A DNA stretch of 64,000 nucleotides from Phyllobates terribilis (taxonomy: Eukaryota): positions 6,758,001-6,822,000 of the forward strand of contig NW_027362776.1 of NCBI RefSeq assembly GCF_046119375.1, in the 5' to 3' direction. How positions within the stretch are numbered: the first letter of the stretch is position 1; each line of letters starts with the position of its first letter. The notes beneath the pieces are model-generated. The model made no database searches. It saw only the letters and a program-made list of their open reading frames with translations, and was not told where the DNA came from. The translations under genes were made by a program, and so were the position numbers. Of this stretch, positions 1-22,400 are shown one piece after another.

Positions 1-186
1 AGATGAGCGCCTCGCGCCGCTCATCTCCCGGCTGCATCTCCGTCCCGCAGATGGGTCCGGCGGTCGGGGTCCTTCTGCCGGTACCGGCCACTGAGCTCCG
101 TCCCGCAGATGAGCCGCTAACGGCCGCCATTTTTTTTCTGAAATCCCGCGGCGCTGATTGGCCGCTGGCGGACCAATGAGCGACGC
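1..186. promoter_or_regulatory. CpG-rich promoter-like segment (possibly the 5' region of an upstream DIRS element)
   Basis: GC/CpG-rich. YY1-type CCGCCATTTT at 124-133; ATTGG 157-161 and CCAAT 173-177 (opposite-strand CCAAT boxes); 16-nt direct repeat CTCCGTCCCGCAGATG at 38-53 and 96-111. Truncated by the N gap, so function is inferred only. Confidence 0.3.
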
Positions 187-336
187 NNNNNNNNNNNNNN
201 NNNNNNNNNNNNNNNNNNNNNNNNNNNNNNNNNNNNNNNNNNNNNNNNNNNNNNNNNNNNNNNNNNNNNNNNNNNNNNNNNNNNNNNNNNNNNNNNNNNN
301 NNNNNNNNNNNNNNNNNNNNNNNNNNNNNNNNNNNN
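187..336. other. Assembly gap (150 N)
   Basis: Run of N; the true length is unknown. Confidence 0.97.
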
Positions 337-540
337 TTATATAGTAGATGTTGAGGTGGCGGTTATGTATTAACCGGTTTTCGGAGGCCCTCTCATGCTC
401 TAAAACAAAAACTGATGCGGAAGAGAGGTACCGCCTTTTTATTCAGTAGGTTCCTGTCCTTGGTGGGCGGATACCCTCTCTCAGGTGGTGCTGTCATGGG
501 CTCTGTAAAATCCCGTTACCGGTAAGTAACTAGGATCTTT
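337..540 (+). mobile_element. Right terminus of a second, divergent DIRS-family element
   Basis: Same ordered motifs as the right end at 5517-5612: TTCCTGTCC(T/C)TGG 451-463, TGGTGCTGTCA 486-496, TTACCGGTAAGT 516-527, then a T run. The intervening sequence differs. Confidence 0.6.
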
Positions 541-643
541 TTCCAGGACGTGCCCCTGACAGCTCCATGGGGGACGTCCTCCTAATCCTTCCAGGGACAG
601 GAAACATGAGAGGTTAAAAGCCCCCCATCCTCCTGTGCTTTTC
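540..643 (+). repeat. DIRS left inverted terminal repeat
   Basis: TTTCCAGGA...CCTGACAGC.CCATGG.GGACGTCCTCCTAA.CCTTCCAGGGACAGGAAACA..AGAGGTTAAAAGCCCCC is the reverse complement of 5462-5580, with about 11 mismatches over the first ~86 nt. Confidence 0.9.
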
Positions 644-891
644 CTGTCCGTGGGAGGATAGGAACAGGAGAGGAGCAAAGGGTCTGTGGACCCGAAGATC
701 TTACCGGATGGCGGACCCAGGGGGATCGGGTGGCCTAGCTTCTCCTTCCCCCTGAGAAGATGTCCGTAGCTGACTGGCCCCCTCAGCCGGGCCAGTGTAT
801 CGCTGCTCCTGGCCTCGGAGCCGCTTCCCTCTGGCGAGGGCTGATGGCTCCAGCGCAGCCCTCCTGAGCGCGATGCCTCCAGGACCCGATG

Positions 892-905
892 TGACGCACT
901 TCCGG
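892..905. promoter_or_regulatory. CRE half-site plus ETS motif in the DIRS CpG-rich leader
   Basis: TGACGCA 892-898 overlaps ACTTCCGG 898-905 within a CpG-rich stretch upstream of ORF1. Motif match only. Confidence 0.3.
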
Positions 906-1053
906 CGGGAGCGCGCGCTTTTTTTTCAAATTTAAAGGTGCAGTCGGCGTGCGTTTCAGGCTGGAACGCATGAAGCAGAGAAGACAACAGGACAGGTAGT
1001 ATAAAAAGGCTTGCCTGTGTTCTGTGTATCTGCTGTGCTGGTGACTGTTAAGG

Positions 1054-2228
1054 ATGGAGGACTCTGGTAAAACTGAGACCCCATCTGAGCCTTCCATGGT
1101 GCACGTGAGTAGGGATGGTCCTATGGAACAGGGTATTCTGGGGATACTGGCTATAGTTTTTCCCCCTTAAATAAATTATATATTCCTCCCTGTCCCTCTA
1201 TGTCTTATAGGACAGGGTTCCCACTAATCCACTAATGACAGTTAAGAAGGATAATAAAAAGGATACTGGGAAGCCTAAGAGATGTGTCATCTGTAACACT
1301 AAGTTGCCCCTAGCATGTGGAAAATACTTATGTGAGAGATGCACTTCCAGGATAGTTTGGGAGGAACAGCTGTCCATCCTGGCAGACATGAGGTGCAGGA
1401 TCAGGGAAGAGGTTCAAGCCTCCATTTCTGGCCTAGTTTCATCCCAGGCCCTGAGCAAAGAGGCCTAGGTGGGAGATGGAACTTAGTTCAGAGGATGAGC
1501 CACAATCCTACGTGTCTGAGGACGACGAGGAAGATGACACGGCTTCTAACCCGCCAGAAGAAAGAAAGAGATACCTGTTTTTGTCAGAGTATACGGACGA
1601 ACTCTTGAGGTCTGTCAGAAACACCATGCAGGTGGAAGAGACTCCTAAATCTCATTCCGTACAGCATGAGATGTTCGGAGGCCTCAGGTCACAGAGAAAC
1701 AGAGTTTTCCTGGTTAACAACCATATCTGGGCTATGATCCTGGAAGAGTGGGAAGACGCTGAAAAGAGACTAGTCGTCCCACGAGACTTTAGACTCCATC
1801 TACCATTTGACCCTGAGGACATTAAAACATGGGAGGAGATTCCCAAGATTGACGTCCCGGTAGCCAAGATAGCTAAAAAATCTTCAATCCCCTTTGAGAA
1901 CTCTTCTAGACTGATGACCCGATTGACAGGAAGGCGGATGGCCTTTTAAAAAGGACCTGGGAGACTTCAGCAGCTATCATTAAAACTAATATTGCGGCAA
2001 CATCTGTTGCCAGGTCTATGTACATTTGGGTCGACGATCTTGAAGAACAGTTGAGATCTAAGACTCCTAGGGATACTATCCTAAAATCACTTCCCTTACT
2101 GAGATTGGCGACAGGTTTCATGGCTGACACTTCAGCAGAATCCGTCAGATTTGCAGCCACAAATAGTGTGTTATCAAACACAACTAGACAGGCTATCTGG
2201 TTAAAGACATGGTCAGGGGATAGTCAGT
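1054..2228 (+). pseudogene. DIRS ORF1 (gag-like; N-terminal C2-C2 zinc-finger-like motif and LAP2alpha-like region), frameshifted
   Basis: RCVICNTKLP...LCERC; acidic linker SEDDEEDD; IDVPVAKIAKK, DPIDRKADGLLK, ARSMYIWV, GFMADTSAESVR, RQAIWLKTWSGD. Frame changes near 1470 and 1915. Start ATG 1054 assumes the intron at 1105-1210. Confidence 0.85.
1105..1210 (+). other. Putative 106-nt GT-AG intron in DIRS ORF1
   Basis: CAC|GTGAGT donor at 1105; pyrimidine tract TTCCTCCCTGTCCCTCTATGTCTTATAG| ending at 1210. Removing it joins AGGATGG (ATG 1054, A at -3, G at +4) in frame to the zinc-finger ORF; the unspliced frame hits TAA. Confidence 0.65.
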
Positions 2229-4080
2229 CAGGCGACTTAGTAAGCTCATCTCAGGCTGGCAGTCCATAACTCCAAATCAGTGGGTGTTAAATACTCTGAG
2301 TACAGGGTACAGGATAGAATTTTTCCAGTACCCACCCGAAAGGTTCATTTTAACCGAGTCCCAACCTACAGTAAAAATTTCCCCCCATGTGGTCAAAAGT
2401 TCAGAACTTTCTGCAAATAATTGCGGTTTCCCAAAACGAGCAGTTTCAGGGCCACTACTCGAGACTGTTTTCCATAAAAAAGCCATCAGGGGAAACGTGG
2501 ATAATTATAAACCTAAAACCATTAAATCTGTGGGTAACATACAAGTGTTTCAAGATGGAGTTGATCAAGTCGACAATCCCTCTAATAGACAAATACGCAG
2601 TAATGTGCACCTTGGATCTAAAAAAAGGCATACTATCATGTTCCCATTCATCAACAGTATCAAAAATATCTTAGTTTCGCTGTCAGGTACGGTGATCATG
2701 TTCACCACTTCCAGTTCTGTTGCCTACCCTTCGGCCTAGCCTCTGCCCCGCGGGTCTTTACCAAGTTAGTAGCAGAGATTGTATCTTACCTGAGGAAAAC
2801 AGGAGTCATCATGGTCCCTTACCTAGATAACTTTTTATTTGTGGCCGGTTCTCATTTAGAGCTACAGGAACACATACAATTTACAGTGTCCACCCTAAAA
2901 AATCTAGGTTGGTTGACAAATTGGGAAAAGTCGGACCTAGTCCCGGGAACCAGAAAGATCTTCTTAGAGGTCACTTTAGACTCCCGTCTAAGAACCTTGT
3001 TTCTACCAACGGTGAAACAAAAAGCGATAATAGACAAGGTATTTCAATTTTCAAGAAGTCGTTGCTCGATCAGGTCAGCAATGAAGATTCTCGGATTGAT
3101 GACAGCCTGCATTCCTTGTGGGAGGTGGAGTCATTTTCATTTAAGGGAACTGTAAAAAGCATTTTTATCTCGTTGAAACAAAAAGCAATTGTCCCTAGAC
3201 AAGTTAATGCCTCTGTCAGGGATAACAAAAGAGAGTCTGGGGTGGTGGACAGTCCCAGAAATTCTTCAGCTGGGGTTAGACTGGGTTCCCTCTCCAGTTG
3301 TAGTCATCACGACCGACGCAAGTCAGTCAGGTTGGGGTGGCCACATAGAGGAAAATATTTTCAAGGGGCTTGGTCTCTAGAGGTTCAGGCTATGTCATCA
3401 GACTACCGGGAACTTATCGCTGCGTGGGAAGTTCTTCGGCGTAATGGTTACCTGGTATGAAACAAACACATAAAGATACTGTCGGACAATACGACGATGG
3501 TATGTTTTTTGCGACATCAGGGAGGCCCGAGACACACAATACTTCAAAGTCTGGCATCGAAAATATTTGTCCGGTTAGAAAAGTTTGCCCTATCAATCTC
3601 GGCAGTCCACTTAAAATTGCTCACAATCAGCAGATTTGCTAAGCAGACCAGAAGTTCTACCTTCAGAATAGGAAATAAATGGGGAGGTTTTCCACACTTT
3701 GTGTCACTGATGGGGTGTCCCACAGATAGACCTGTTCGTAACGAGAAAAAATGGAAAGACCAAGAAATTTAACTCCCCAGGACAACCCAACGGGAATTGA
3801 TGCGTTATCCCAGGCATGGTCAGAAAGTCTCTATTACTCCTTCCCTCCCTTACTCTTGATTCCAAGGGTCCTAAGGAAAATACAGGAAGATCAGATAAAG
3901 ATAATTCTGATAGTCCCTTTCTGGCCAAGAAGGAGTTGGTTCCCCCCTTTGTCCAAGATGGCCCTGGATGATTCAATATTGCTTCCCTTAAGGAAAGATC
4001 TCCTTTTCCAGGGACCAGTCTTATATCAGAACTTGGGCTGATTACACCTCTTGGCTTGGATCCTGAGAGGCAGATTTTGA
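2229..4080 (+). pseudogene. DIRS ORF2: reverse transcriptase, RNase H and Dam-like methyltransferase domain, disrupted
   Basis: RRL...WQSITPNQWVL...GYRIEF; LDLK.AYYHVPI (frameshifted); LPFGLASAPRVFTK; YLDN in place of YLDD (~2820-2831). RNase H: TTDASQSGWG, RELIAA, ILSDN, HQGG. MT: PQIDLF, DALSQAW...YSFPPLLLIPRVLRKI...VPFWPRRSWF. Confidence 0.92.
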
Positions 4081-5260
4081 AATCCCAAGGCCTATCAGAT
4101 CAGGTCATAACTATGATACTGGCAAGTCGAAAACCAGTCACCTTAGCTATTTATAGGAAAATCTGTTTATAAAGTGGAAGCTCTGCAGTGGAACAACCCT
4201 CTAGCTTCACATCCATGGATAGCCAGGTTTGCAAAGGCAGTTCAGAGGCTAAGGCCTTGGGTAAAAAGATCTGTTCCACCGTGGGATCTTAATTTAGTGT
4301 TTAATGCCCTATGCAAGCAGCCATACAAGCCAGCCAAGGAAATAAATATCATTAGGCTTAGCCTTAAGACAGCCTTTCTAGTTGCTATCAACACTGCTAA
4401 GAGGGTGGGGGAACTACAGGCATTATTCATGGAAAATCCATATTTGCAGATTTATGACGATAGAATCATGCTGAGGTTAAAGCCAGGGTTTCTCCCTAAG
4501 GTAGTCTCTACAAAAAATATCAATCAAGACATTGTCCTGTCGTCATTTTGCCAATTCCCCAAAAAATCCGAAAGAACAGTTTTTCCATTCCTTAGATATG
4601 AGACAGTCGGTCATTAGTTACCTTGAGACCACTCGTGATTGGAGAATAGATCATAACTAGTGTTGAGCGAGTAAGTTCTATTAACCCTTTCGCCGAGTAT
4701 GCTCGGGCCCAGCTCCGAATATTTATAGCTACTCGGTGATAAGGTTAAATCGCTCCCGTGTGCATGATTTGCCACTGTTTGACAGTTTTATTACATGGGA
4801 GGAATGTACACATTCCTCACGTGTAATAAAGCTGTCAAACAGTTGCAAATCATGCACACGGGAGCGATTCAACCATATCACCGAGCAGCTATAAATATTC
4901 GGAGCTCGGCCCGAGCATACTCGAACAGAACATACTCGCTCAACACTAATCATAACATGTTCATCCAGTATGCTGGTAGGAAAAAGGGGAAAAAAAGCAT
5001 CTAAGAAGACCACCCCCAGGTGGATTAGATCCACGATAGGGCTCGCCTATTCAGCAGAGGGGAACAGTCCCCCGGAAGGGTTGAAAGCCCACTCTACTCG
5101 TTCAGTCTCAGAAAAAGGTGGGGCCTCTTTAGAACAAATATGCGCTGCAGCAACATGGGCAAGTCTGAGTACCTTTTCTAGGCACTATAAAATGGATGTC
5201 CTGGCAGGACAGGGAGTAGCTTTTGGCAGGAAGGTTCTCCATGTGGTAGTCCCACCCTAG
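4077..5260 (+). pseudogene. DIRS ORF3 tyrosine recombinase, disrupted and MITE-interrupted
   Basis: LKSQGLSDQVI..SRK; HPWIARF; VPPWDLNLV; AKRVGELQAL (catalytic R); HSTRS (HxxR); AATW; FSRHY (catalytic Y); ends HVVVPP* at 5260. Confidence 0.92.
4658..4948. mobile_element. hAT-type non-autonomous MITE (291 bp, almost fully palindromic)
   Basis: TIRs TAGTGTTGAGCGAGTA / TACTCGCTCAACACTA; perfect 8-bp TSD ATCATAAC (4650-4657 and 4949-4956); arms pair inward to GAGGAATGT-AC-ACATTCCTC. Excision restores YR codons WRIDHNMFIQYAG. Confidence 0.92.
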
Positions 5261-5277
5261 GGAAATACTTTGGTATT

Positions 5278-5364
5278 CTCCATGGTGCTGTCAGGGAGAC
5301 ATCCTCTAAAGCGGTAATTAGACTTACCGGTAATTGTGTTTCCAGGAGTCCATCCTGACAGCAC
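5278..5364 (+). repeat. DIRS internal complementary region (ICR)
   Basis: 5311-5364 is the reverse complement of the right end 5555-5608 (52/54). 5278-5310 is the reverse complement of the left tip 540-572 (26/33). The two parts join across AAA, matching the TTT circle junction. Confidence 0.92.
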
Positions 5365-5461
5365 AGTTAGTTTCTCTCCCTCCTTGAATGTCTATACATT
5401 GTGAAGTTACATGTGTATGTAGAGATTAATAAGTGTTGCATCCATCCAGTTGTGGTACTTA

Positions 5462-5612
5462 GAAAAAACACAGGATGGGAGGGGGGGGGGGGGGGGGGGC
5501 TTTTAACCTCTTGTGTTTCCTGTCCCTGGAAGGCTTAGGAGGACGTCCTCCATGGTGCTGTCAGGATGGTCTCCTGGAAACACAATTACCGGTAAGTCTA
5601 ATTACCACTTTT
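5462..5612 (-). repeat. DIRS right ITR plus right extension, ending in TTT
   Basis: Inverted copy of 540-643, followed by CACAATTACCGGTAAGTCTAATTACCAC-TTTT; contains a 19-G run at 5481-5499. Confidence 0.9.
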
Positions 5613-5828
5613 GTAGTAATCCGATGAGCCAGAAATCATGAGATATGCATATGAAAATTAGCCTGGAAATGCCACCACTTGCAGGCAAATTTACAAAGCT
5701 TAATTTGTCAACGGCGGCTCATCAGATTACGGTACTATAAAACATGAATCCTGTTTACTGTTGTACTAAAGCCTATTAAGCCTTACCACTAGTTTTATAT
5801 CAGTAAAATCGCCCTGGCAAGTTCCCCT
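5613..5828. mobile_element. Degenerate palindromic MITE remnant (T2/Kolobok-like right end)
   Basis: Inverted pair GTAATCCGATGAGCC 5616-5630 / GGCTCATCAGATTAC 5716-5730; the end TGGCAAGTTCCCCT resembles the T2 end at 6687-6699. Confidence 0.35.
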
Positions 5829-8484: not shown

Positions 8485-9285
8485 TGTGACATGCAGAAGT
8501 ACTGCTGTTGCTTTAAAAGCATTCAGCAACTATTAGAAGTAACACAAGCACAGGAGACAGGAAGTGTTGTGCTCCAGAAACATCCAGCAACTAGAGGGGT
8601 TAACACAGTCACAGGAGAAGGGGAGCATTTTAGCAGAGCCCCAGGGGGATCGTGGGGAAGTTGTTTACTGTCTGGCTGGAGCTGAAGAGAAAGGTGGTGT
8701 GTGTGTTCTGTATCTCACAGAAGCGCCCCTGCAAGTGAAAAGGATTCAAGTCAGGAGTGAAGCTAAGCAGAGGTCAGGTAGAGTTTCTGAACTAACAGTG
8801 CAGAGTATTGTCAGGCAGAAAGATAAGGACTGGAAGAAATGGTGTCACAGGGGTCATCTCCCTCAGCAAACCCCCCCCCCCCCTCCATCTCACTGAGCTG
8901 TAAAAAATGCTGTGTTCATTAATGTGCCTTTGCATTACAACTGTGCTGTCCTGTACTACTGGGAAGACTGTGAACTGCTGTGCTGCTAAGGAAACTGTAC
9001 TGTTTGTTACTGGAGCCTGTTGCTCATAAGACTTAACTTGCACTGGCTGTGCGGCTTCTTATTAAATGCTACTGTTCTACTGTTTATGAGGACTCTTGTC
9101 AAGTGTGTCTGGTCAGCCAGTGAAACAACCTACGTGTCTGTGCCTGAGGGTCAATACCCCTGTGTGCCTGAGAGAAGCTGCAGCACATGGTCTGTGGTCA
9201 CCCTGAGTAACGGTTCCCCCAGGATTCCAAAGAATTCATGTAACCTGTCTCGCCTCTATCTGAACCTAGCGGTGTGCGTGTAACA
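8485..9285. mobile_element. Probable solo LTR (801 bp, Gypsy-like)
   Basis: TGTGACA...TGTAACA termini (TG...CA, 6/7 inverted match); flanked by AAAA on both sides (8481-8484 and 9286-9289; low-complexity, so a weak TSD); ATTAAA at 9061; no PBS or internal region adjoining. Confidence 0.6.
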
Positions 9286-10236
9286 AAAACTCAATGTCTT
9301 AAAAGCAACCAAGAAAACCTATTTGTCATATTATTTTCTACATTTAGCCAATGGAAAATAAGTTGTTGGTGCCAAACTCCTGTACAGGAAATAGGCTACG
9401 CCACTGAATTCTGAAGTTTTATTGTACTCCTTAACTATAAATGTTAAGTGTGGGAATATTCAGAAATTGCTTTTCCTGTGAAGCTATTTCCCAGTCATGC
9501 AAGTCAAAGGTTGGCAGCTTGCTGCTTTCTTTTCTTGAAAGAAATGTTTTTGTTACTTGAGCCAGTAGACTAGTTATCTTACAGTTTAAAGTAATTGTCT
9601 ACTAAAGGGCAAACCCTTTTCAATTCCCACAATGTGCGGAATAAAATAAGAAAAAAGCCATTTCCCACCTGGATCGGGACCCCCACGTTGTGTGCTGTGT
9701 TCCCCAGGCGATCTCATAACATTGTTAATGTTACGTAAGTGCTGCAGCTTTCACAATTCCTTCTGATGAGACCGTAGTTCTGTTTGATAGACCTGTGAAT
9801 GTTTTAGCTACACCTGATAAGCAGAAGTGCCCATGTGATATTTACAACGTCACAAGATCGCTGGGGGTCAAGGTGCTTGGACCCGATAAGCAGCATAGGT
9901 ACAGGAGGTACTGTGTGTATCCAAGAAAAACCAATAGATGTACAATGTAAAAGTAGTCAAAAAATAGTAAAAGCCGATGGCATGTGTGAAGACTTGCCTA
10001 TCAAGAACTCCCAATGCGAGGAGTTTCACAACTGTTTCTTATGAGGTCAAATGAAATAAAAACCTCTAAAATGACCTATCGGATAGACGCTATTCTTCTG
10101 GTCTCAGCACCAGACACCTGACACATGCTACCAATTGGCAGCCATTGATCAGTTGCAGTCTTTACTTTCCTTTTTTCTTTACTTTTCCGTCAGAAGTTGT
10201 TAGTATATAGTAGTAAATAAATTGGCTGCATTATAA

Positions 10237-11912
10237 GGCTGTGTTCACACGATGCGTTTTTAATGCTCTTCCGCGGCGTTTTTGCAGCTGCGTAAACGCT
10301 GCGGAAACGCATTAAAAACGCATGGTAGAAGGGCAGCAATGTTCCCCAATTGAAATCCGCATGTGCTGTGCCCATGATGCGGATTTTTCCGCAGCGTAAA
10401 CGCTGCGCTCAAAAATCCGCAGCATGTCAATTAATTTTGCGTAAACGCTGCGTTTTCGCCGCCATTGACTTGCATTAGAACGCGCCAATTCCGCTAAACT
10501 GCATTTGTACTTGCGTTATTGGCACGTTCTAATATGCGGATGGTACCCGGGTGTGGAGGAGAGGAGAGTCTCATCCACACCCAGGTACCATTAAAAAAGC
10601 TGTAAGGCTGAGTTCACACGATGCGTTTTTCATGCGTTTCCGCGGCGTTTTTGCAGTTGCGTAAACGCCGCGGAAACGCATGAAAAACGCATGGTAGAAG
10701 GGAAGCAATGTTCCCCAATGGAAATCCGCATGTGCTGTGCCCATGATGCGGATTTTTCCGCAGCGTAAACGCTGCGGTCAAAAATCCGCAGCATGTCAAT
10801 TAATTTTGCGGAAACGCTGCTCTTTTGCCGCCATTGACTTGCATTAGACCGCATGGAATCCGCATCACTGTATATGTTGATGCGCTTTTCATGCGGTCTA
10901 ATGTGCGGATGGTACCCGGGTGTGGATGAGAGGACTCTCATGCAGACCCAGGTACCATTAAAAAAAAAAGAATAAAATAAAAAATATATATATTCTCACC
11001 TTCTGACGGCCCGCGCTGCGTCCTGCCGGCTTCCCGGGCACTTCGCGGTTGAATGAAGAAGGACCTTCGCTGACGTCAGAGTCATGTGACGGGTCACGTG
11101 ACGCTGACGTCGGAAGGTCCTACAGTCTTCACTGCCGGCAGCCGGGACCGATGAAGCAGGACACCGGGGGCCATCAGAGGGTAAAGTATAGATTTATTTT
11201 TTGACATCACACACTATATAAATCCATGCCGGCTGCATGGATTTATATAGTGTGAAGTTGACAAGCACTTTCCAAGTGATGCTAAAATCGCTTGGGAAGC
11301 GCTTGTCAACCCGCATGCGGAAATGAAAGTGAAGACCGCTTCATTTCCGCATGTCCCTGGCAGGAAACCGCATGTACAATCCGCATGCGTTTTTTCCTGC
11401 CAGAGAGATGCAGAAACGCTCAGGAAAAAATCCTGAGCATTTCTGCATCGTGTGCACATACCCTAAAAAAAGAATAAAATAAAAAATAAATGTATACTTA
11501 CCTACTGTCGGCCCGCGCACCGCTCCTGCTTGGTTCCCGGCACCAACTGAGTTGAAGGACCTGCGCTGACGTCGGCAGTTGCCGTCAAGGGAGAACTGAG
11601 CAGGACACCGGGGGCCATCAGAGGGTAAAGTATACATGTATTTTTTATTTTTACCATTCTCTCGGGTCACACTATATAAATCCATGCTGGTTGCATGGAT
11701 TTATATAGTGTGACCTAGCTGTCAAGCACTTTCCAAGTGATGCTAAAATCGCCTGGAAAGCGCTTGTCAATCCGCATGCGGAAACGCATGTGAATCCGCA
11801 TGTATTCCGCAGGAAAAAAGCATGTACAATCCGCATGCGTTTTTTCTGCCAGGGAGATGCAGAAATGATGCAGAAATTTTCTGCTTCATTTCTGCATCGT
11901 GTGCACATACCC
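10237..11912. mobile_element. PIF/Harbinger-like MITE, outer copy (split by the inner copy)
   Basis: TAA|GGCTGTGTTCACACGATGC ... GCATCGTGTGCACATACCC|TTA; TWA flanks; left half 10237-10602 and right half 11467-11912. Confidence 0.75.
10606..11463. mobile_element. PIF/Harbinger-like MITE, inner copy of the same family
   Basis: TAA|GGCTGAGTTCACACGATGC ... GCATCGTGTGCACATACCC|TAA, an identical 3-bp TSD. Both halves align with the outer copy (left-half offset ~368 nt). Confidence 0.8.
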
Positions 11913-12500
11913 TTAGACTACTCTTAGCTATGTCCTATTTTACGCTTGTATTTGGTAAGACAAATTACAGGGATAAAACACATAATAATCTGGTTCACTT
12001 TTGGGCACAATTTGTGCCAGAAATATGCTCAGTAAATCTTCGCCTCTTCTGTATCAAATTTTAAGATCTTTGTTTGTTGTCTTGAAAATGTGTTGAGATC
12101 CACTGACAAACACCAGTAATTGGTGAAGAAGCATTCACCACAATCCAATCTTGGGCCTGTGTAAGCATGGCTGCAAACGGGCATCTCGTTCGTCGGCTGT
12201 TTGGATCGTTGTCAGTCACACCTCGGGCACGTAATTAGGAGATGTGCTGCCAGAACAATCCTGGTACCAATTGTTCTGTCCTCCTATAGTTTGTATCGAG
12301 CTGTGAATACCAGGCCACAAATGGTGCCATTGACGAAGACATTTGATTCGACTTGTGTATGGCTCATTGAGAGTGTCAGATCTTGGAGCCATACATGTAA
12401 GGACAGGGTTTTTTCAACTGTTTATGATATAATGAATAATTGTTATGAATATAAAATGGTAAAATCCCTTTATTAACATCAGTTACTGTTTCTGCTTTGA

Positions 12501-12641
<141 letters not shown>

Positions 12642-13458: not shown

Positions 13459-16400
13459 TGTCACACTGATCAGAACACTGATGGAATACTGCTGGCACAC
13501 TGATCACAACACTGCTGGCACACTGATCACAACACTGCTGGCACACTGATCACAACACTGCTGGCACACTGATCACAACACTGCTAGCACACTGATCACA
13601 ACACTGCTGGCACACTGATCACAACACTGCTGGCACACTGATCAGAACACTGCTGGCACATTGATCAGAACACTGCTGGCACATTGATCAGAACACTGCT
13701 GGCACATTGATCAGAACACTGCTGGCACACTGATCACAACACTGCTGGCACACTGATCACAACACTGCTGGCACACTGATCACAACACTGCTGGCACACT
13801 GATCACAACACTGCTGTCACACTGATCACAACACTGCTGTCACACTGATCACAACACTGCTGTCACACTGATCACAACACTGCTGTCACACTGATCACAA
13901 CACTGCTGGCACACTGATCACAACACTGCTGGCACACTGATCACAACACTGCTGGCACACTGATCACAACACTGCTAGCACATTGATCAGAACACTGCTG
14001 GCACACTGATCAGAACACTGCTGGCACACTGATCAGAACACTGCTGGCACACTGATCAGAACACTGATCAGAACATTGATGACACACTGATCAGAACACT
14101 ACTGGCACACTGATCAGAGCACTGCTAGCACACTGATCAGAACAATGCTGGCACACTGATCAGAATACTGCTGGCACACTGATCAGAATACTGCTGGCAC
14201 ACTGATCAGAATACTGCTGGCACACTGATCAGAACACTGATCAGAACATTGATGACACACTGATCAGAACACTACTGGCACACTGATCAGAACACTGATC
14301 AGAACATTGATGGCACACTGATCAGAACATTGATGGCACACTGATCCGAATACTGCTGGCACACTGATCCGAATACTGCTGGCACACTGATCCGAATACT
14401 GCTGGCACACTGATCCGAATACTGCTGGCACACTGATCAGAACACTGATCAGAACATACATGGCACACTAATCAGAACACTGCTGGCACACTGATCCGAA
14501 TACTGCTGGCACACTGATCAGAACACTGATCAGAACATAGATGGCACACTGATCAGAATACTGCTAGCACACTGATCAGAACACTGCTGGCACACTGATC
14601 AGAACACTGCTGGCACACTGATCAGAACACTGCTGGCACACTGATCAGAACATTGATGATACACTGATCAGAACACTGCTGGCACACTGATCAGAACACT
14701 GATCAGAACATAGATGGCACACTGATCCGAATACTGCTGGCACACTGATCCGAATACTGCTGGCACACTGATCAGAATACTGCTGGCACACTGATCAGAA
14801 CATAGATGGCACACTGATCAGAATACTGCTGGCACACTGATCAGAACATTGATGGCACACTGATCAGAACACTGCTGGCACACTGATCAGAATACTGCTG
14901 GCACACTGATCAGAATACTGCTGGCACACTGATCAGAACATACATGGCACACTGATCAGAACATTGATGGCACACTAATCAGAACACTGCTGGCACACTG
15001 ATCAGAATACTGCTGGCACACTGATCCGAATACTGCTGGCACACTGATCCGAATACTGCTGGCACACTGATCCGAATACTGCTGTCACACTGACCAGAAC
15101 ACTGCTGTCACACTGACCAGAACACTGCTGTCACACTGACCAGAACACTGCTGTCACACTGACCAGAACACTGCTGTCACACTGACCAGAACACTGCTGT
15201 CACACTGACCAGAACACTGCTGTCACACTGACCAGAACACTGCTGTCACACTGACCAGAATACTGCTGTCACACTGACCAGAATACTGCTGGCACACTGA
15301 TCCGAATACTGCTGGCACACTGATCCGAATACTGCTGGCACACTGATCCGAATACTGCTGGCACACTGATCCGAATACTGCTGGCACACTGATCAGAACA
15401 CTGATCAGAACATAGATGGCACACTAATCAGAACACTGCTGGCACACTGATCCGAATACTGCTGGCACACTGATCCGAATACTGCTGGCACACTGATCCG
15501 AATACTGCTGGCACACTGATCCGAATACTGCTGGCACACTGATCCGAATACTGCTGGCACACTGATCCGAATACTGCTGGCACACTGATCAGAACACTGA
15601 TCAGAACACTGCTGGCACACTGATCCGAATACTGCTGGCACACTGATCCGAATACTGCTGGCACACTGATCAGAATACTGCTGGCACACTGATCAGAACA
15701 CTGATCAGAACATAGATGGCACACTGATCAGAATACTGCTGGCACACTGATCAGAACATTGATGGCACACTGATCAGAACACTGCTGGCACACTGATCAG
15801 AATACTGCTGGCACACTGATCAGAACATTGCTGGCACACTGATCAGAACATACATGGCACACTGATCAGAATACTGCTGGCACACTGATCAGAACATTGA
15901 TGGCACACTAATCAGAACACTGCTGGCACACTGATCAGAATACTGCTGGCACACTGATCAGAACATTGATGATACACTGATCAGAACACTGCTGGCACAC
16001 TGATCAGCACACTGCTGGCACACTGATCAGAACACTGCTGGCACACTGATCAGAACACTGCTGGCACACTGATCAGAACACTGCTGGCACACTGATCAGA
16101 ACACTGCTGGCACACTGATGGCACACTGATCAGAACACTGCTGGCACACTGAACAGAATACTGCTGGCACACTGATCAAAACATTGATGGCACACTGATC
16201 AGAACATTGATGGCACACTGATCAGAACATTGATGGCACACTAATCAGAACACTGCTGGCACACTGATCAGAATACTGCTGGCACACTGATCAGAACATT
16301 GATGATACACTGATCAGAACACTGCTGGCACACTGATCAGAACACTGCTGGCACACTGATCAGAACACTGCTGGCACACTGATCAGAACACTGCTGGCAC

Positions 16401-19400
16401 ACTGATCAGAACACTGCTGGCACACTGATCAGAACACTGCTGGCACACTGATCAGAACACTGCTGGCACACTGATCAGAACACTGCTGGCACACTGATCA
16501 GAACACTGCTGGCACACTGATCGGCACACTGCTGGCACACTGATCGGCACACTGCTGGCACACTGATCAGAACACTGCTGGCACACTGAACAGAATACTG
16601 CTGGCACACTGATCAGAACATTGATGGCACACTGATCAGAACATTGATGGCACACTGATCAAAACATGGATGGCACACTAATCAGAACACTGCTAGCACA
16701 CTGATCAGAACACTGATCAGAGCACTGCTGGCACACTGATCAGAACACTGCTGGCACACTGATCAGAACACTGCTGGCACACTGATCAGAACACTGCTGG
16801 CACACTGATCAGAACACTGATGGTATTCTGCTGGCACACTGATCAGAACACTGCTGGCACACTGATCAGAACACTGCTGGCACACTGATCAGAACACTGC
16901 TGGCACACTGATCAGAACACTGCTGGCACACTGATCAGACTACTGCTGGCACACTGATCAGAACACTAACCGGAACATTGATGGCACAATGATCAGAACA
17001 CTGCTGGCACACTGATCAGAACACTACTGGCACACTGATCAGAACACTACTGGCACACTGATCAGAACACTGATCAGAAGACTTCTGGCACACTGATCAG
17101 AACACTACTGGCACACTGATGGCACAATGATCGGAACTCTGGCACGCTGCTAGCACACTGATCAGAACACTGCTGGCACACTGATCAGAACACTGCTGGC
17201 ACACTGATCAGAACACTGATCGGCACACTGATCAAAACACTGATCAGAACACTGATGGCACACTGATCGGAACACTGCTGGCACACTGATCAGAACACTA
17301 CTGGCACACTGATCAGGACACTACTGGCACACTGATCAGGACACTACTGGCACACTGATCAGGACACTACTGGCACACTGATGGCACAATGATCGGAACT
17401 CTGGCACGCTGCTAGCACATTGATCAGAACACTGATGACACACTGATCAAAACACTGATCAGAACACTGATGACACACTGATGGGATCACTGATGGCACA
17501 CTGATGGGATCACTGCTGGCAAACTGATCAAAACACTGATCAGAACTCTGACAGCACACTGATCAGAAGACTTCTGGCACACTGATCAGAACACTACTGG
17601 CACACTGATCAGGACACTCATGGCACACTGATCAGAACACTGCTGGCACACTGATCAGAACACTGATCAGAAGACTTCTGGCACACTGATCAGAACACTA
17701 CTGGCACACTGATGGCACAATGATCGGAACTCTGGCACGCTGCTAGCACACTGATCAGAACACTGCTGGCACACTGATCAGAACACTGCTGGCACACTGA
17801 TCAGAACACTGATGGCACACTGATCAAAACACTAATCAGAACACTGATGGCACACTGATTGGATCACTGCTGGCACACTGATCGGAACACTGCTGGCACA
17901 CTGATCAGAACACTACTGGCACACTGATCAGGACACTCATGGCACACTGATGGCACAATGATCGGAACTCTGGCACGCTGCTAGCACACTGATCAGAACA
18001 CTGATGGCACACTGATCAGAACACTGATGGCACAGTGATCAGAACACTGATGGCACACTGATCAAAACACTGATCAGAACACTGATGGGATCACTGATGG
18101 CACACTGATGGGATCACTGCTGGCAAACTGATCAAAACACTGATCAGAACTCTGACAGCACACTGATCAGAAGACTTCTGGCACACTGATCAGAACACTA
18201 CTGGCACACTGATCAGGACACTCATGGCACACTGATCAGAACACTGATGGCACACTGATGGGATCACTGCTGGCACACTGATGGGATCACTGCTGGCACA
18301 CTGATGGGATCACTGCTGGCACACTGATGGGATCACTGCTGGCACACTGATGGGATCACTGCTGGCACACTGATGGGATCACTGCTGGCACACTGATGGG
18401 ATCACTGCTGGCACACTGATGGGATCACTGCTGGCACACTGATGGGATCACTGCTGGCACACTGATGGGATCACTGCTGGCACACTGATGGGATCACTGC
18501 TGGCACACTGATGGGATCACTGCTGGCACACTGATGGGATCACTGCTGGCACACTGATGGGATCACTGCTGGCACACTGATGGGATCACTGCTGGCACAC
18601 TGATGGGATCACTGCTGGCACACTGATCGGAACACTGCTGGCACACTGATCGGAACACTGCTGGCACGCTGATCGGAACACTGCTGGCACGCTGATCGGA
18701 ACACTGCTGGCACGCTGATCGGAACACTGATCAGAACACTGATCAAAACACTGATCAGAACACTGCTGGCACACTGATCAAAACACTGATCAGGACACTG
18801 ATCAAAACACTGATGGCACACTGATCAGAACACTGCTGGGACACTGATCCGAACACTGATCAGAACACTGATGGTAAACTGCTGGCACACTTATCAGAAC
18901 ACTGATGGCACACTGATCAGAACACTGTTGGCACACTGATCAGAACACTGATGGAACACTGATCAGAACACTGCTGGCACACTGATCAGAACATGGATGG
19001 CACACTGATCAGAACACTGATCGTAACACTGATCAGAACACTGATCGGAACACTGATGGCACATTGATCAGAACACTGCTGGCACACTAATCAGTACACT
19101 GATGGCACACTGATCAGAACACTGATGGCACACTGATCAGAACACTGATGGCACACTGATCAGAACACTGATCGGAACACTGATCAGAACACTGATCGGA
19201 ACACTGATGGCACACTGATCAGAACACTGATGGCACACTGATCAGAACACTACTGGCACACTGATCAGAACACTGCTGGCACACTGATCAGAGCACTGAT
19301 CAGAACACTGATGGCACACTGATCAGAACACTGATCAGAACATGGATGGCACACTGATCAGAACAGTGCTGGCACACTGATCAGAACACTACTGGCACAC

Positions 19401-22400
19401 TGATGGAACACTGCTGGCACACTGATGGGATCACTGCTGGCACACTGATGGGATCACTGCTGGCACACTGATGGGATCACTGCTGGCACACTGATGGGAT
19501 CACTGCTGGCACACTGATGGGATCACTGCTGGCACACTGATCGGAACACTGCTGGCACACTGATCGGAACACTGTTGGCACGCTGATCGGAACACTGTTG
19601 GCACGCTGATCGGAACACTGTTGGCACGCTGATCGGAACACTGTTGGCACGCTGATCGGAACACTGCTGGCACGCTGATCAGAACACTGCTGGCACGCTG
19701 ATCAGAACCCTGCTGGCACGCTGATCAGAACCCTGCTGGCACGCTGATCAGAACCCTGCTGGCACGCTGATCAGAACCCTGCTGGCACGCTGATCAGAAC
19801 CCTGCTGGCACGCTGATCAGAACCCTGCTGGCACACTGATCAGAACCCTGCTGGCACACTGATCAGAACCCTGCTGGCACACTGATCAGAACCCTGCTGG
19901 CACACTGATCAGAACCCTGCTGGCACACTGATCAAAACACTGATCAGGACACTGATCAAAACACTGATCAGAACACTGATCAAAACACTGATCAGAACAC
20001 TGCTGGCACACTGATCAAAACACTGATCAGCACACTGATCAAAACACTGATGGCACACTGATCAGAACACTGCTGGGACACTGATCCGAACACTGATCAG
20101 AACACTGATGGTAAACTGCTGGCACACTTATCAGAACACTGATGGCACACTGATCAAAACACTGATCAGAACACTGTTGGCACACTGATCAGAACACTGA
20201 TGGAACACTGATCAGAACACTGCTGGCACACTGATCAGAACATGGATGGCACACTGATCAGAACACTGATCAGAACACTGATCGGAACACTGATGGCACA
20301 TTGATCAGAACACTGCTGGCACACTAATCAGTACACTGATGGCACACTGATCAGAACACTGATGGCACACTGATCAGAACACTGCTGGCACACTAATCAG
20401 TACACTGATGGCACACTGATCAGAACACTGATGGCACACTGATCAGAACACTGATGGCACACTGATCAGAACACTGATCGTAACACTGATCAGAACACTG
20501 ATCGGAACACTGATGGCACACTAATCAGTACACTGATGGCACACTGATCAGAACACTACTGGCGCACTGATCAGAACACTGATGGCACACTGATCAGAAC
20601 ACTGATCAGAACATGGATGGCACACTGATCAGAACAGTGCTGGCACACTGATCAGAACACTACTGGCACAATGATGGAACACTGCTGGCACACTGATCAG
20701 AACACTGTTGGCATACTGATCAGAACATTGATGGCACACTGATCAGAACACTGCTGGCACACTGATCAGAACATGGATGGCACACTGATCAGAACACTGA
20801 TAATACACTGCTGGTACACTGATCAGAACACTGCTGGGACTCTGATCAGAACACTGATCAGAACACTGATGGTACACTGCTTGCACACTGATCAGAACAC
20901 TGATCAGAACACGGATGGCACACTGATCAGAACACTGATGGCACACGGATCAGAACACTGATGGCACACGGATCAAAACACTGATGGCACACTGATCAGA
21001 ACACTGCTGGGACACTGATCCGAACACTGATCAGAACACTGATGGTAAACTGCTGGCACACTTATCAGAACACTGATGGCACACTGATCAAAACACTGAT
21101 CAGAACACTGTTGGCACACTGATCAGAACACTGATGGAACACTGATCAGAACACTGCTGGCACACTGATCAGAACACTGCTGGCACACTGATCAGAACAC
21201 TGCTGGCACACTGATCAGAACACTGCTGGCACACTGATCAGAACACTGCTGGCACACTGACCAGAACACTGCTGGCACACTGACCAGAACACTGCTGGCA
21301 CACTGACCAGAACACTGCTGGCACACTGACCAGAACACTGCTGGCACACTGACCAGAACACTGCTGGCACACTGACCAGAACACTGCTGGCACACTGACC
21401 AGAACACTGCTGGCACACTGACCAGAACACTGCTGTCACACTGACCAGAACACTGCTGTCACACTGACCAGAACACTGCTGTCACACTGACCAGAACACT
21501 GCTGTCACACTGACCAGAACACTGCTGTCACACTGACCAGAACACTGCTGTCACACTGACCAGAACACTGCTGTCACACTGACCAGAACACTGCTGTCAC
21601 ACTGACCAGAACACTGCTGTCACACTGATCAAAACACTGTTGGCACACTGATCAGAACACTGCTGTCACACTGATCAAAACACTGATCAGAACACTGTTG
21701 GCACACTGATCAGAACACTGCTGGCACACTGATCAGAACACTGCTGGCACACTGATCAGAACACTGCTGGCACACTGATCAGAACACTGCTGGCACACTG
21801 ATCAGAACACTGTTGGCACACTGATCAGAACACTGCTGGCACACTGATCAGAACACTGCTGGCACACTGATCAGAACACTGCTGGCACATTGATCAGAAC
21901 ACTGCTGGCACACTGATCAGAACACTGCTGGCGCACTGATCAGAACACTGCTGGCGCACTGATCAGAACACTGCTGGCGCACTGATCAGAACACTGCTGG
22001 CGCACTGATCAGAACACTGCTGGCGCACTGATCAGAACACTGCTGGCACACTGATCAGAACACTGCTGGCACACTGATCAGAACACTGCTGGCACACTGA
22101 TCAGAACACTGCTGGCACACTGATCAGAACACTGCTGGCACACTGATCAGAACACTGCTGGCACACTGATCAGAACACTGCTGGCACACTGATCAGAACA
22201 CTGCTGGCACACTGATCAGAACACTGATCAGAACATGGATGGCACACTGATCAGAACAGTGCTGGCACACTGATCAGAACACTACTGGCACACTGATGGA
22301 ACACTGCTGGCACACTGATCAGAACACTGCTGTCACACTGATCAAAACACTGATCAGAACACTGTTGGCACACTGATCAGAACACTGCTGGCACACTGAT

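Follow-up and report, generated by a model that had tools for sequence, protein, structure and literature searches.

Amphibian DIRS elements are reported to carry TTT at both ends, to create no target duplication and to integrate by exchange of a 3-bp junction with an identical trinucleotide of the genome (PMC3266345). No experiment has yet addressed which targets DIRS recombinases prefer, and the binding site is undefined for any of them (PMC7192593), even though the clustering of these elements shapes the centromeres of Dictyostelium, and chromosome rearrangement in fish has been tied to it (PMC5941688). The locus described here raises the question of whether the end of a resident DIRS element can itself serve as a target for another. 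It lies at the beginning of a 64,000-nt window of frog DNA (the window being the whole stretch analysed), where the left end of a decayed DIRS1-like retrotransposon (element A, 540–5611, + strand, 5.07 kb) is directly preceded by 203 nt (337–539, + strand) that form the right terminal region of a second DIRS1-like family (B). As judged from the order and spacing of terminal motifs, the pairing of inverted repeats and contig depth, two DIRS tips of different families are joined head to tail here within one T run. How this came about is a question of probabilities, and the reading preferred below is that the tyrosine-recombinase pathway of DIRS elements made the join by acting on a resident DIRS tip.

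Element A is recognized by its inverted repeats, its internal complementary region (ICR) and remnants of its pol and recombinase genes. Its left inverted terminal repeat (540–633, + strand) pairs over 94 nt with 5487–5580 at 85% complementarity, rising to 93% in the 72-nt core (555–626), and starts where the sequence-only reading of this DNA had placed it. The right terminal region (5487–5611, + strand) is made up of the right inverted repeat (5487–5580) and a 31-nt right extension (5581–5611) that ends in TTT. Both halves of the ICR (5278–5364, + strand) share the AAA at 5308–5310, and the tips of the element carry TTT at 540–542 and 5609–5611. The right half (5308–5364) is complementary to the right tip (5555–5611) at 55 of 57 positions (96%), whereas the left half (5278–5310) fits the left tip (540–572) poorly, at 26 of 33 positions (79%; Fisher p = 0.011 for the two proportions). 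The left tip of intact DIRS in other tetrapods matches its own ICR at 93–100%. Contigs matching 547–576 are about 10-fold fewer than those matching 577–636, and the left tip of A looks atypical or recombinant. The flanks of the element have nothing in common beyond T, and there is no target-site duplication. Directly right of the right tip, a 14-nt inverted repeat (approximately 5616–5629 and 5717–5730) brackets some 90 nt and may be a small MITE in the flank.

The coding part of A is broken in every reading frame into many short frames, and its ancestry is nonetheless legible. The segment 2233–4068, in the place of the reverse transcriptase/RNase H region upstream of the recombinase, is colinear with the pol open reading frame of an intact DIRS of Anolis sagrei (E = 2.7e-52), and the recombinase region (4207–5254) with the frames of intact DIRS of Anolis and of Chelydra serpentina. 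Two recombinase remnants (4174–4614 and 4970–5257) match proteins annotated as ‘Tyr recombinase domain-containing’ and DIRS recombinase frames (E = 1.8e-13, and values down to 5e-43). Searches of the open reading frame fragments against Pfam gave only a weak match to RVT_1 in the reverse transcriptase region, below the cut-off, and no domain in the recombinase fragments. Used as a protein query, a recombinase fragment of A retrieved only four distant proteins, and a turtle recombinase retrieved many vertebrate DIRS recombinases. The protein closest to A (P0096) is represented by seven short Logan contigs, which end about 100 nt past the recombinase gene, before any terminus. The recombinase gene of A is split by a near-perfect palindrome of 230 nt (4694–4923) with 114-nt arms that are 93% complementary around a 2-nt centre; it may be a foldback or MITE-like element.

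The closest published counterparts in design are XtDIRS2 and XtDIRS3 of Xenopus tropicalis (Piednoel et al. 2011, PMC3266345), a likeness that is drawn from their published description. They share with A the size of 5–6 kb, inverted terminal repeats of about 100 nt with a divergent outer part, a right extension of some 30 nt, an ICR whose two halves join at AAA, TTT tips and the lack of a target duplication. A differs from them in its decay, with all frames broken, in the palindrome within its recombinase gene and in the poor fit of its left tip to the ICR. Taken with the evidence on B below, A and B are ordinary members of the DIRS1-like superfamily.

The DNA upstream of A carries the terminal motifs of a right end. 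As the sequence-only reading had claimed, three right-end motifs precede the left inverted repeat on the + strand, namely TTCCTGTCCTTGG of the right repeat at 440–452, TGGTGCTGTCA at 486–496 and TTACCGGTAAGT of the right extension at 516–527, and a T run follows them (538–542, + strand), beginning 10 nt after TTACCGGTAAGT. The right end of A itself has the same motifs in the same order (5517–5529, 5553–5563 and 5586–5597), with a gap of 11 nt before its T run (5609–5612), and the spacings from motif to motif are 46, 30 and 22 nt in the upstream piece versus 36, 33 and 23 nt in A. A and B agree letter for letter in TGGTGCTGTCA and TTACCGGTAAGT. By chance, TTACCGGTAAGT is expected 0.00 times in the window. 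The 11-mer TGGTGCTGTCA, which taken alone is not significant, occurs at 486, 557 (minus strand), 5283 and 5553, so that it is common to both inverted repeats and the left half of the ICR, and in part to the right half; a short motif of this type, common to inverted repeats and ICR, has been described (PMC3266345).

The resemblance extends beyond the motifs. Local alignment of 397–542 with the right end of A (5470–5613) scores 37, about 9 standard deviations above 1000 dinucleotide shuffles (16.0 ± 2.4, maximum 28). The piece 337–539, which comprises an inner flank, a right inverted repeat and a right extension of 31 nt, the same length as in A, is approximately 70–75% alike to the right end of A, whereas the ICR of A reaches 96%, and for this reason the label of a different family, given to the upstream piece from the outset, is fair. 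Comparison with other tetrapods points the same way. A core GGT.AG is invariant in all eight DIRS right ends aligned (516–527 and 5586–5597 of the frog window, together with those of Xenopus laevis, a turtle, three lizards and a snake); in most of them it follows TTAC, and it stands 6–13 nt from the end of the element wherever that end is clear. The resulting right-end signature, TTAC.GGTRAG, is correctly placed in the upstream piece. The DIRS of X. laevis has only the general plan and the right-end motif TTA.CGGTRAGT in common with the elements of the window. As a side observation, the core, in the form GGTRAGT or GGTRAGC, resembles the consensus of a 5′ splice donor. By these sequence features, 337–539 is a true right end from another DIRS family, oriented as A is and complete up to the T run.

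The body of the B element would lie in or beyond the 150 N read at 187–336 (an assembly gap or masked DNA) and the start of the window. The GC-rich stretch before the gap (1–186) contains a hairpin (1–26, with a 9-bp stem), a T8 run, CCAAT-like boxes and a 16-nt perfect direct repeat (38–53 and 96–111). It has no significant similarity to A, nor to any other part of the 64,000-nt window. It is a candidate, of uncertain membership, for the leader of a DIRS that would extend over the gap.

Family boundaries were read from Logan contigs of four runs, representing three individuals and two studies, aligned to 337–1236 at 80% likeness. Summed contig depth is 57,000–350,000 over 397–546 versus 50–5,000 over 547–1236, and contigs identical to the locus have a depth of about 8–11. 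Accordingly placed, 397–532 belongs to a DIRS right-end group (B) about 1000 times more abundant than the A family, with the qualification that summed depth is not copy number and that the 100 nt of strongest conservation probably draw contigs from several families. Alignments of the B group end at 529–532 and continue into diverse sequence with an agreement of about 0.5, a stop that marks the family boundary at the T run. Within B, the depth roughly doubles from position 487 on, and the large class of contigs that diverges before 487 resembles the flank of the ICR of A. Such a doubling is expected of a right extension that is present again in the ICR of each element, which supports B as a true DIRS1-like family. 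The window itself follows the right-repeat class of contigs over 440–486, not the class diverging before 487, so that A does not sit in an ICR of B, and that arrangement was rejected. The nesting of A inside B was likewise rejected, since nothing B-like follows the right end of A.

One way of dissolving the problem would be to read 337–539 as a longer left terminus within the consensus of the A family itself. Adjacency to A is all that speaks for this, and the contigs speak against it: those of the A family start to align at 540 (records 1 and 7) or at 547 (record 22) and carry 44 to 540 unlike letters upstream, so that 337–539 is not part of the consensus of the A family, and at least two other copies of the family are without a B-like piece upstream. 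The depth also falls approximately 300-fold from bin 517–546 to bin 547–576, and the architecture of 337–539 is that of a right end and not of a left end. The sequence-only reading had itself named such a consensus as the finding that would overturn it; the contigs refute this possibility.

An assembly artefact is a more serious alternative, and still an improbable one. According to it, the first 203 nt next to the gap were wrongly attached to A, as B-type tips are near-identical and extremely numerous. In keeping with this, the junction lies only 203 nt from the N run, the depth is lowest in bin 547–576, and among the contig pieces displayed from the four runs (a minority of all pieces) none bridges 532–547. 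However, contigs built from short words are expected to break at a repeat boundary of this kind, so that a missing bridge proves nothing, and for a misjoin to fall exactly at the true tips of both elements, correctly oriented, would be a coincidence too.

The letters of the junction bear on the mechanism. The reverse complement of an ICR is the template of the circle junction, and the segment 470–600 is colinear with the reverse complement of the ICR of A (score 45), which bears out the claim that the junction mimics that of a DIRS circle. The T run counts 5 T, whereas a shared TTT predicts 3. With equal extensions of 31 nt, the terminal TTT would be 538–540 for B and 540–542 for A, an offset of 2 nt. 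A change in homopolymer length may account for 5 T instead of 3; junction consensuses of the B group range from T3 to T9, and one of them reads T5 followed by CC, the same letters as at the junction of the window.

The preferred explanation, to which we give a probability of about 0.45, is that the tyrosine-recombinase pathway of DIRS elements made the join, with a resident DIRS tip as its target. One of the elements, in circular form, would have recombined with the resident one at its terminal T run or next to it; the resident tip would retain half of a circle junction, with one conserved arm and the core formed by the T run. Against this reading count the single junction, the absence of a B-like piece upstream of at least two other copies of the A family and the lack of such joins among the six left ends delimited in other tetrapods. 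As an analogue, a further prophage or ICE may integrate at the attL or attR of one already in place. In these bacterial systems, a tyrosine recombinase joins a circle to a hybrid site in which one arm and the core of the att site persist, and accretion at attL or attR yields head-to-tail arrays, including arrays of different but related elements. The proposed likeness is that a circle meets a half-site of a resident related element. Prophages and ICEs differ in being DNA elements of bacteria, for which the att sites are defined and the biochemistry is proven; we deal here with one eukaryotic junction with an offset of 2 nt.

Which of the two elements was the resident is a separate matter. The sequence-only reading had A arriving at the right tip of B, and the opposite order, in which B arrived at the left tip of A, is no less likely. 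The piece of B is close to the majority of its group, from which it differs at three listed places (379, 402 and 422, within 379–532), whereas A is divergent from its relatives (at least 30 of 690 places) and broken, a contrast that favours the later arrival of B but is weakened by the conservation of tips. The left tip of A, with its 26 of 33 matches to its own ICR, also fits badly with a freshly made circle of A, in which the left tip should be templated by the ICR.

The same contrast weighs on the possibility that the two families were united before integration. Here, cDNAs or circles of both families would have been joined, be it that an ICR splinted a foreign end or that the recombinase carried out an exchange between two circle junctions, and the heterodimer would then have integrated through its other junction. 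The junction that reads as a circle junction, the terminal motifs common to both families and the requirement for the ICR in DIRS-1 retrotransposition, in which it restores the ends (PMC7192593), would all suit such an origin, as would the state of A, which, being defective, could move only with the help of another element. Against it, a heterodimer predicts equal ages, and the few differences in B set beside the many in A, together with its broken frames, suggest unequal ones (weakly so, given the conserved tips); the window moreover starts inside or beside B, which puts the second hybrid junction out of reach. We regard this origin as quite unlikely.

Chance adjacency deserves more weight, although it too is judged unlikely. 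Two independent insertions at ordinary T-rich sites would simply abut in a genome packed with DIRS, and the resident tip would have no role. Much of the genome of poison frogs consists of DIRS and Ty3-type elements (PMC11152451), tips of the B type abound, and DIRS cluster and nest, as at the X. laevis locus described below. The 5-T run, with its terminal TTTs offset by 2 nt, is less exact than a shared TTT would be, and the join is a single junction picked post hoc among 773 windows (approximately 50 Mb). On the other side stands the geometry, since the join is exact to at most 2 nt at the true tips of both elements, which have the same orientation. A rough estimate can be made: some 10^4 B-type tips and 3 × 10^8 TTT sites yield about one chance tip-to-tip join per genome and, assuming random insertion, approximately 0.02–0.06 such joins in 50 Mb. 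Well below 0.1 event is thus expected in the DNA scanned, unless local clustering lifts the rate at least 10-fold, and the clustering of DIRS does raise the chance rate of end-to-end joins.

Other tetrapods offer a modest comparison. DIRS were delimited in seven loci; a DIRS right terminus was found upstream of none of the six clear left ends (from Xenopus, a turtle, three lizards and a snake), which have ordinary left flanks, and a left end was found after none of the seven right ends. With its six left ends, this sample is much too small to set a limit on how often tip-to-tip joins occur, and what it does display is clustering and nesting. In X. laevis (locus L002, 8940–12535), an internally deleted DIRS of 2.3 kb (9128–11433) sits at a T run within the reverse-transcriptase coding sequence of another DIRS, older and 81% similar to it, whose right end lies at approximately 12402–12535. 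A Sceloporus locus has three DIRS 3′ ends within 21 kb. In Sceloporus undulatus (L003), a DIRS lies between two 85%-identical copies of a segment (1284–4175 and 17766–21038) that itself holds a DIRS 3′ end, and inside the element a stretch of 481 nt is duplicated at 99.8% (11142–11622 and 16085–16565) around an insert of 4.5 kb. Scans of metagenomes with the right end of B and with the two-motif pattern returned nothing beyond one chance match in a bacterial open reading frame.

A broader proposal can be derived from the preferred reading of the junction, and it is more doubtful than that reading: DIRS recombinases in general may use resident DIRS tips, those of other families included, as att-like half-sites, so that circles would accrete into mixed-family head-to-tail arrays. 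If resident tips are attachment half-sites, two families precisely joined tip to tip are the footprint to be expected; being one junction only, the present case is a lead and not a result. If true, the proposal would explain at the level of sequence why DIRS cluster and ‘home’, as has long been known, and ICRs, which contain the whole junction, would be predicted to be the hottest targets of all. Preferential insertion into pre-existing DIRS copies is on record for DIRS-1 of Dictyostelium (Cappello et al. 1984) and for zebrafish, in the form in which these reports are cited in PMC7192593 and PMC5941688. The likeness to the present case is that one DIRS is found in or at another, as is also true of the nested X. 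laevis locus. The difference is that, in those citing accounts, insertion is into copies at large, with no mention of their exact tip, and within one family, whereas here the join is tip to tip and between different families. A search of full-text literature for head-to-tail or tandem arrays of DIRS gave nothing to the point; it extended to papers other than the primary reports (Cappello 1984; Goodwin and Poulter 2001; Poulter and Butler 2015), and tip-directed insertion of DIRS may already have been described somewhere.

The remainder of the window, to the right of A, is of a different nature. Two pairs of direct repeats (10234–10902 and 11155–11913), with a spacing of 370–460 nt and internal palindromes, look like short tandem duplications of another repeat family. 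From 14000 to 64000, the 50 kb that complete the window have a constant strong strand skew (AT skew of about +0.27 and GC skew of about −0.12) and form a giant tandem-repeat block.
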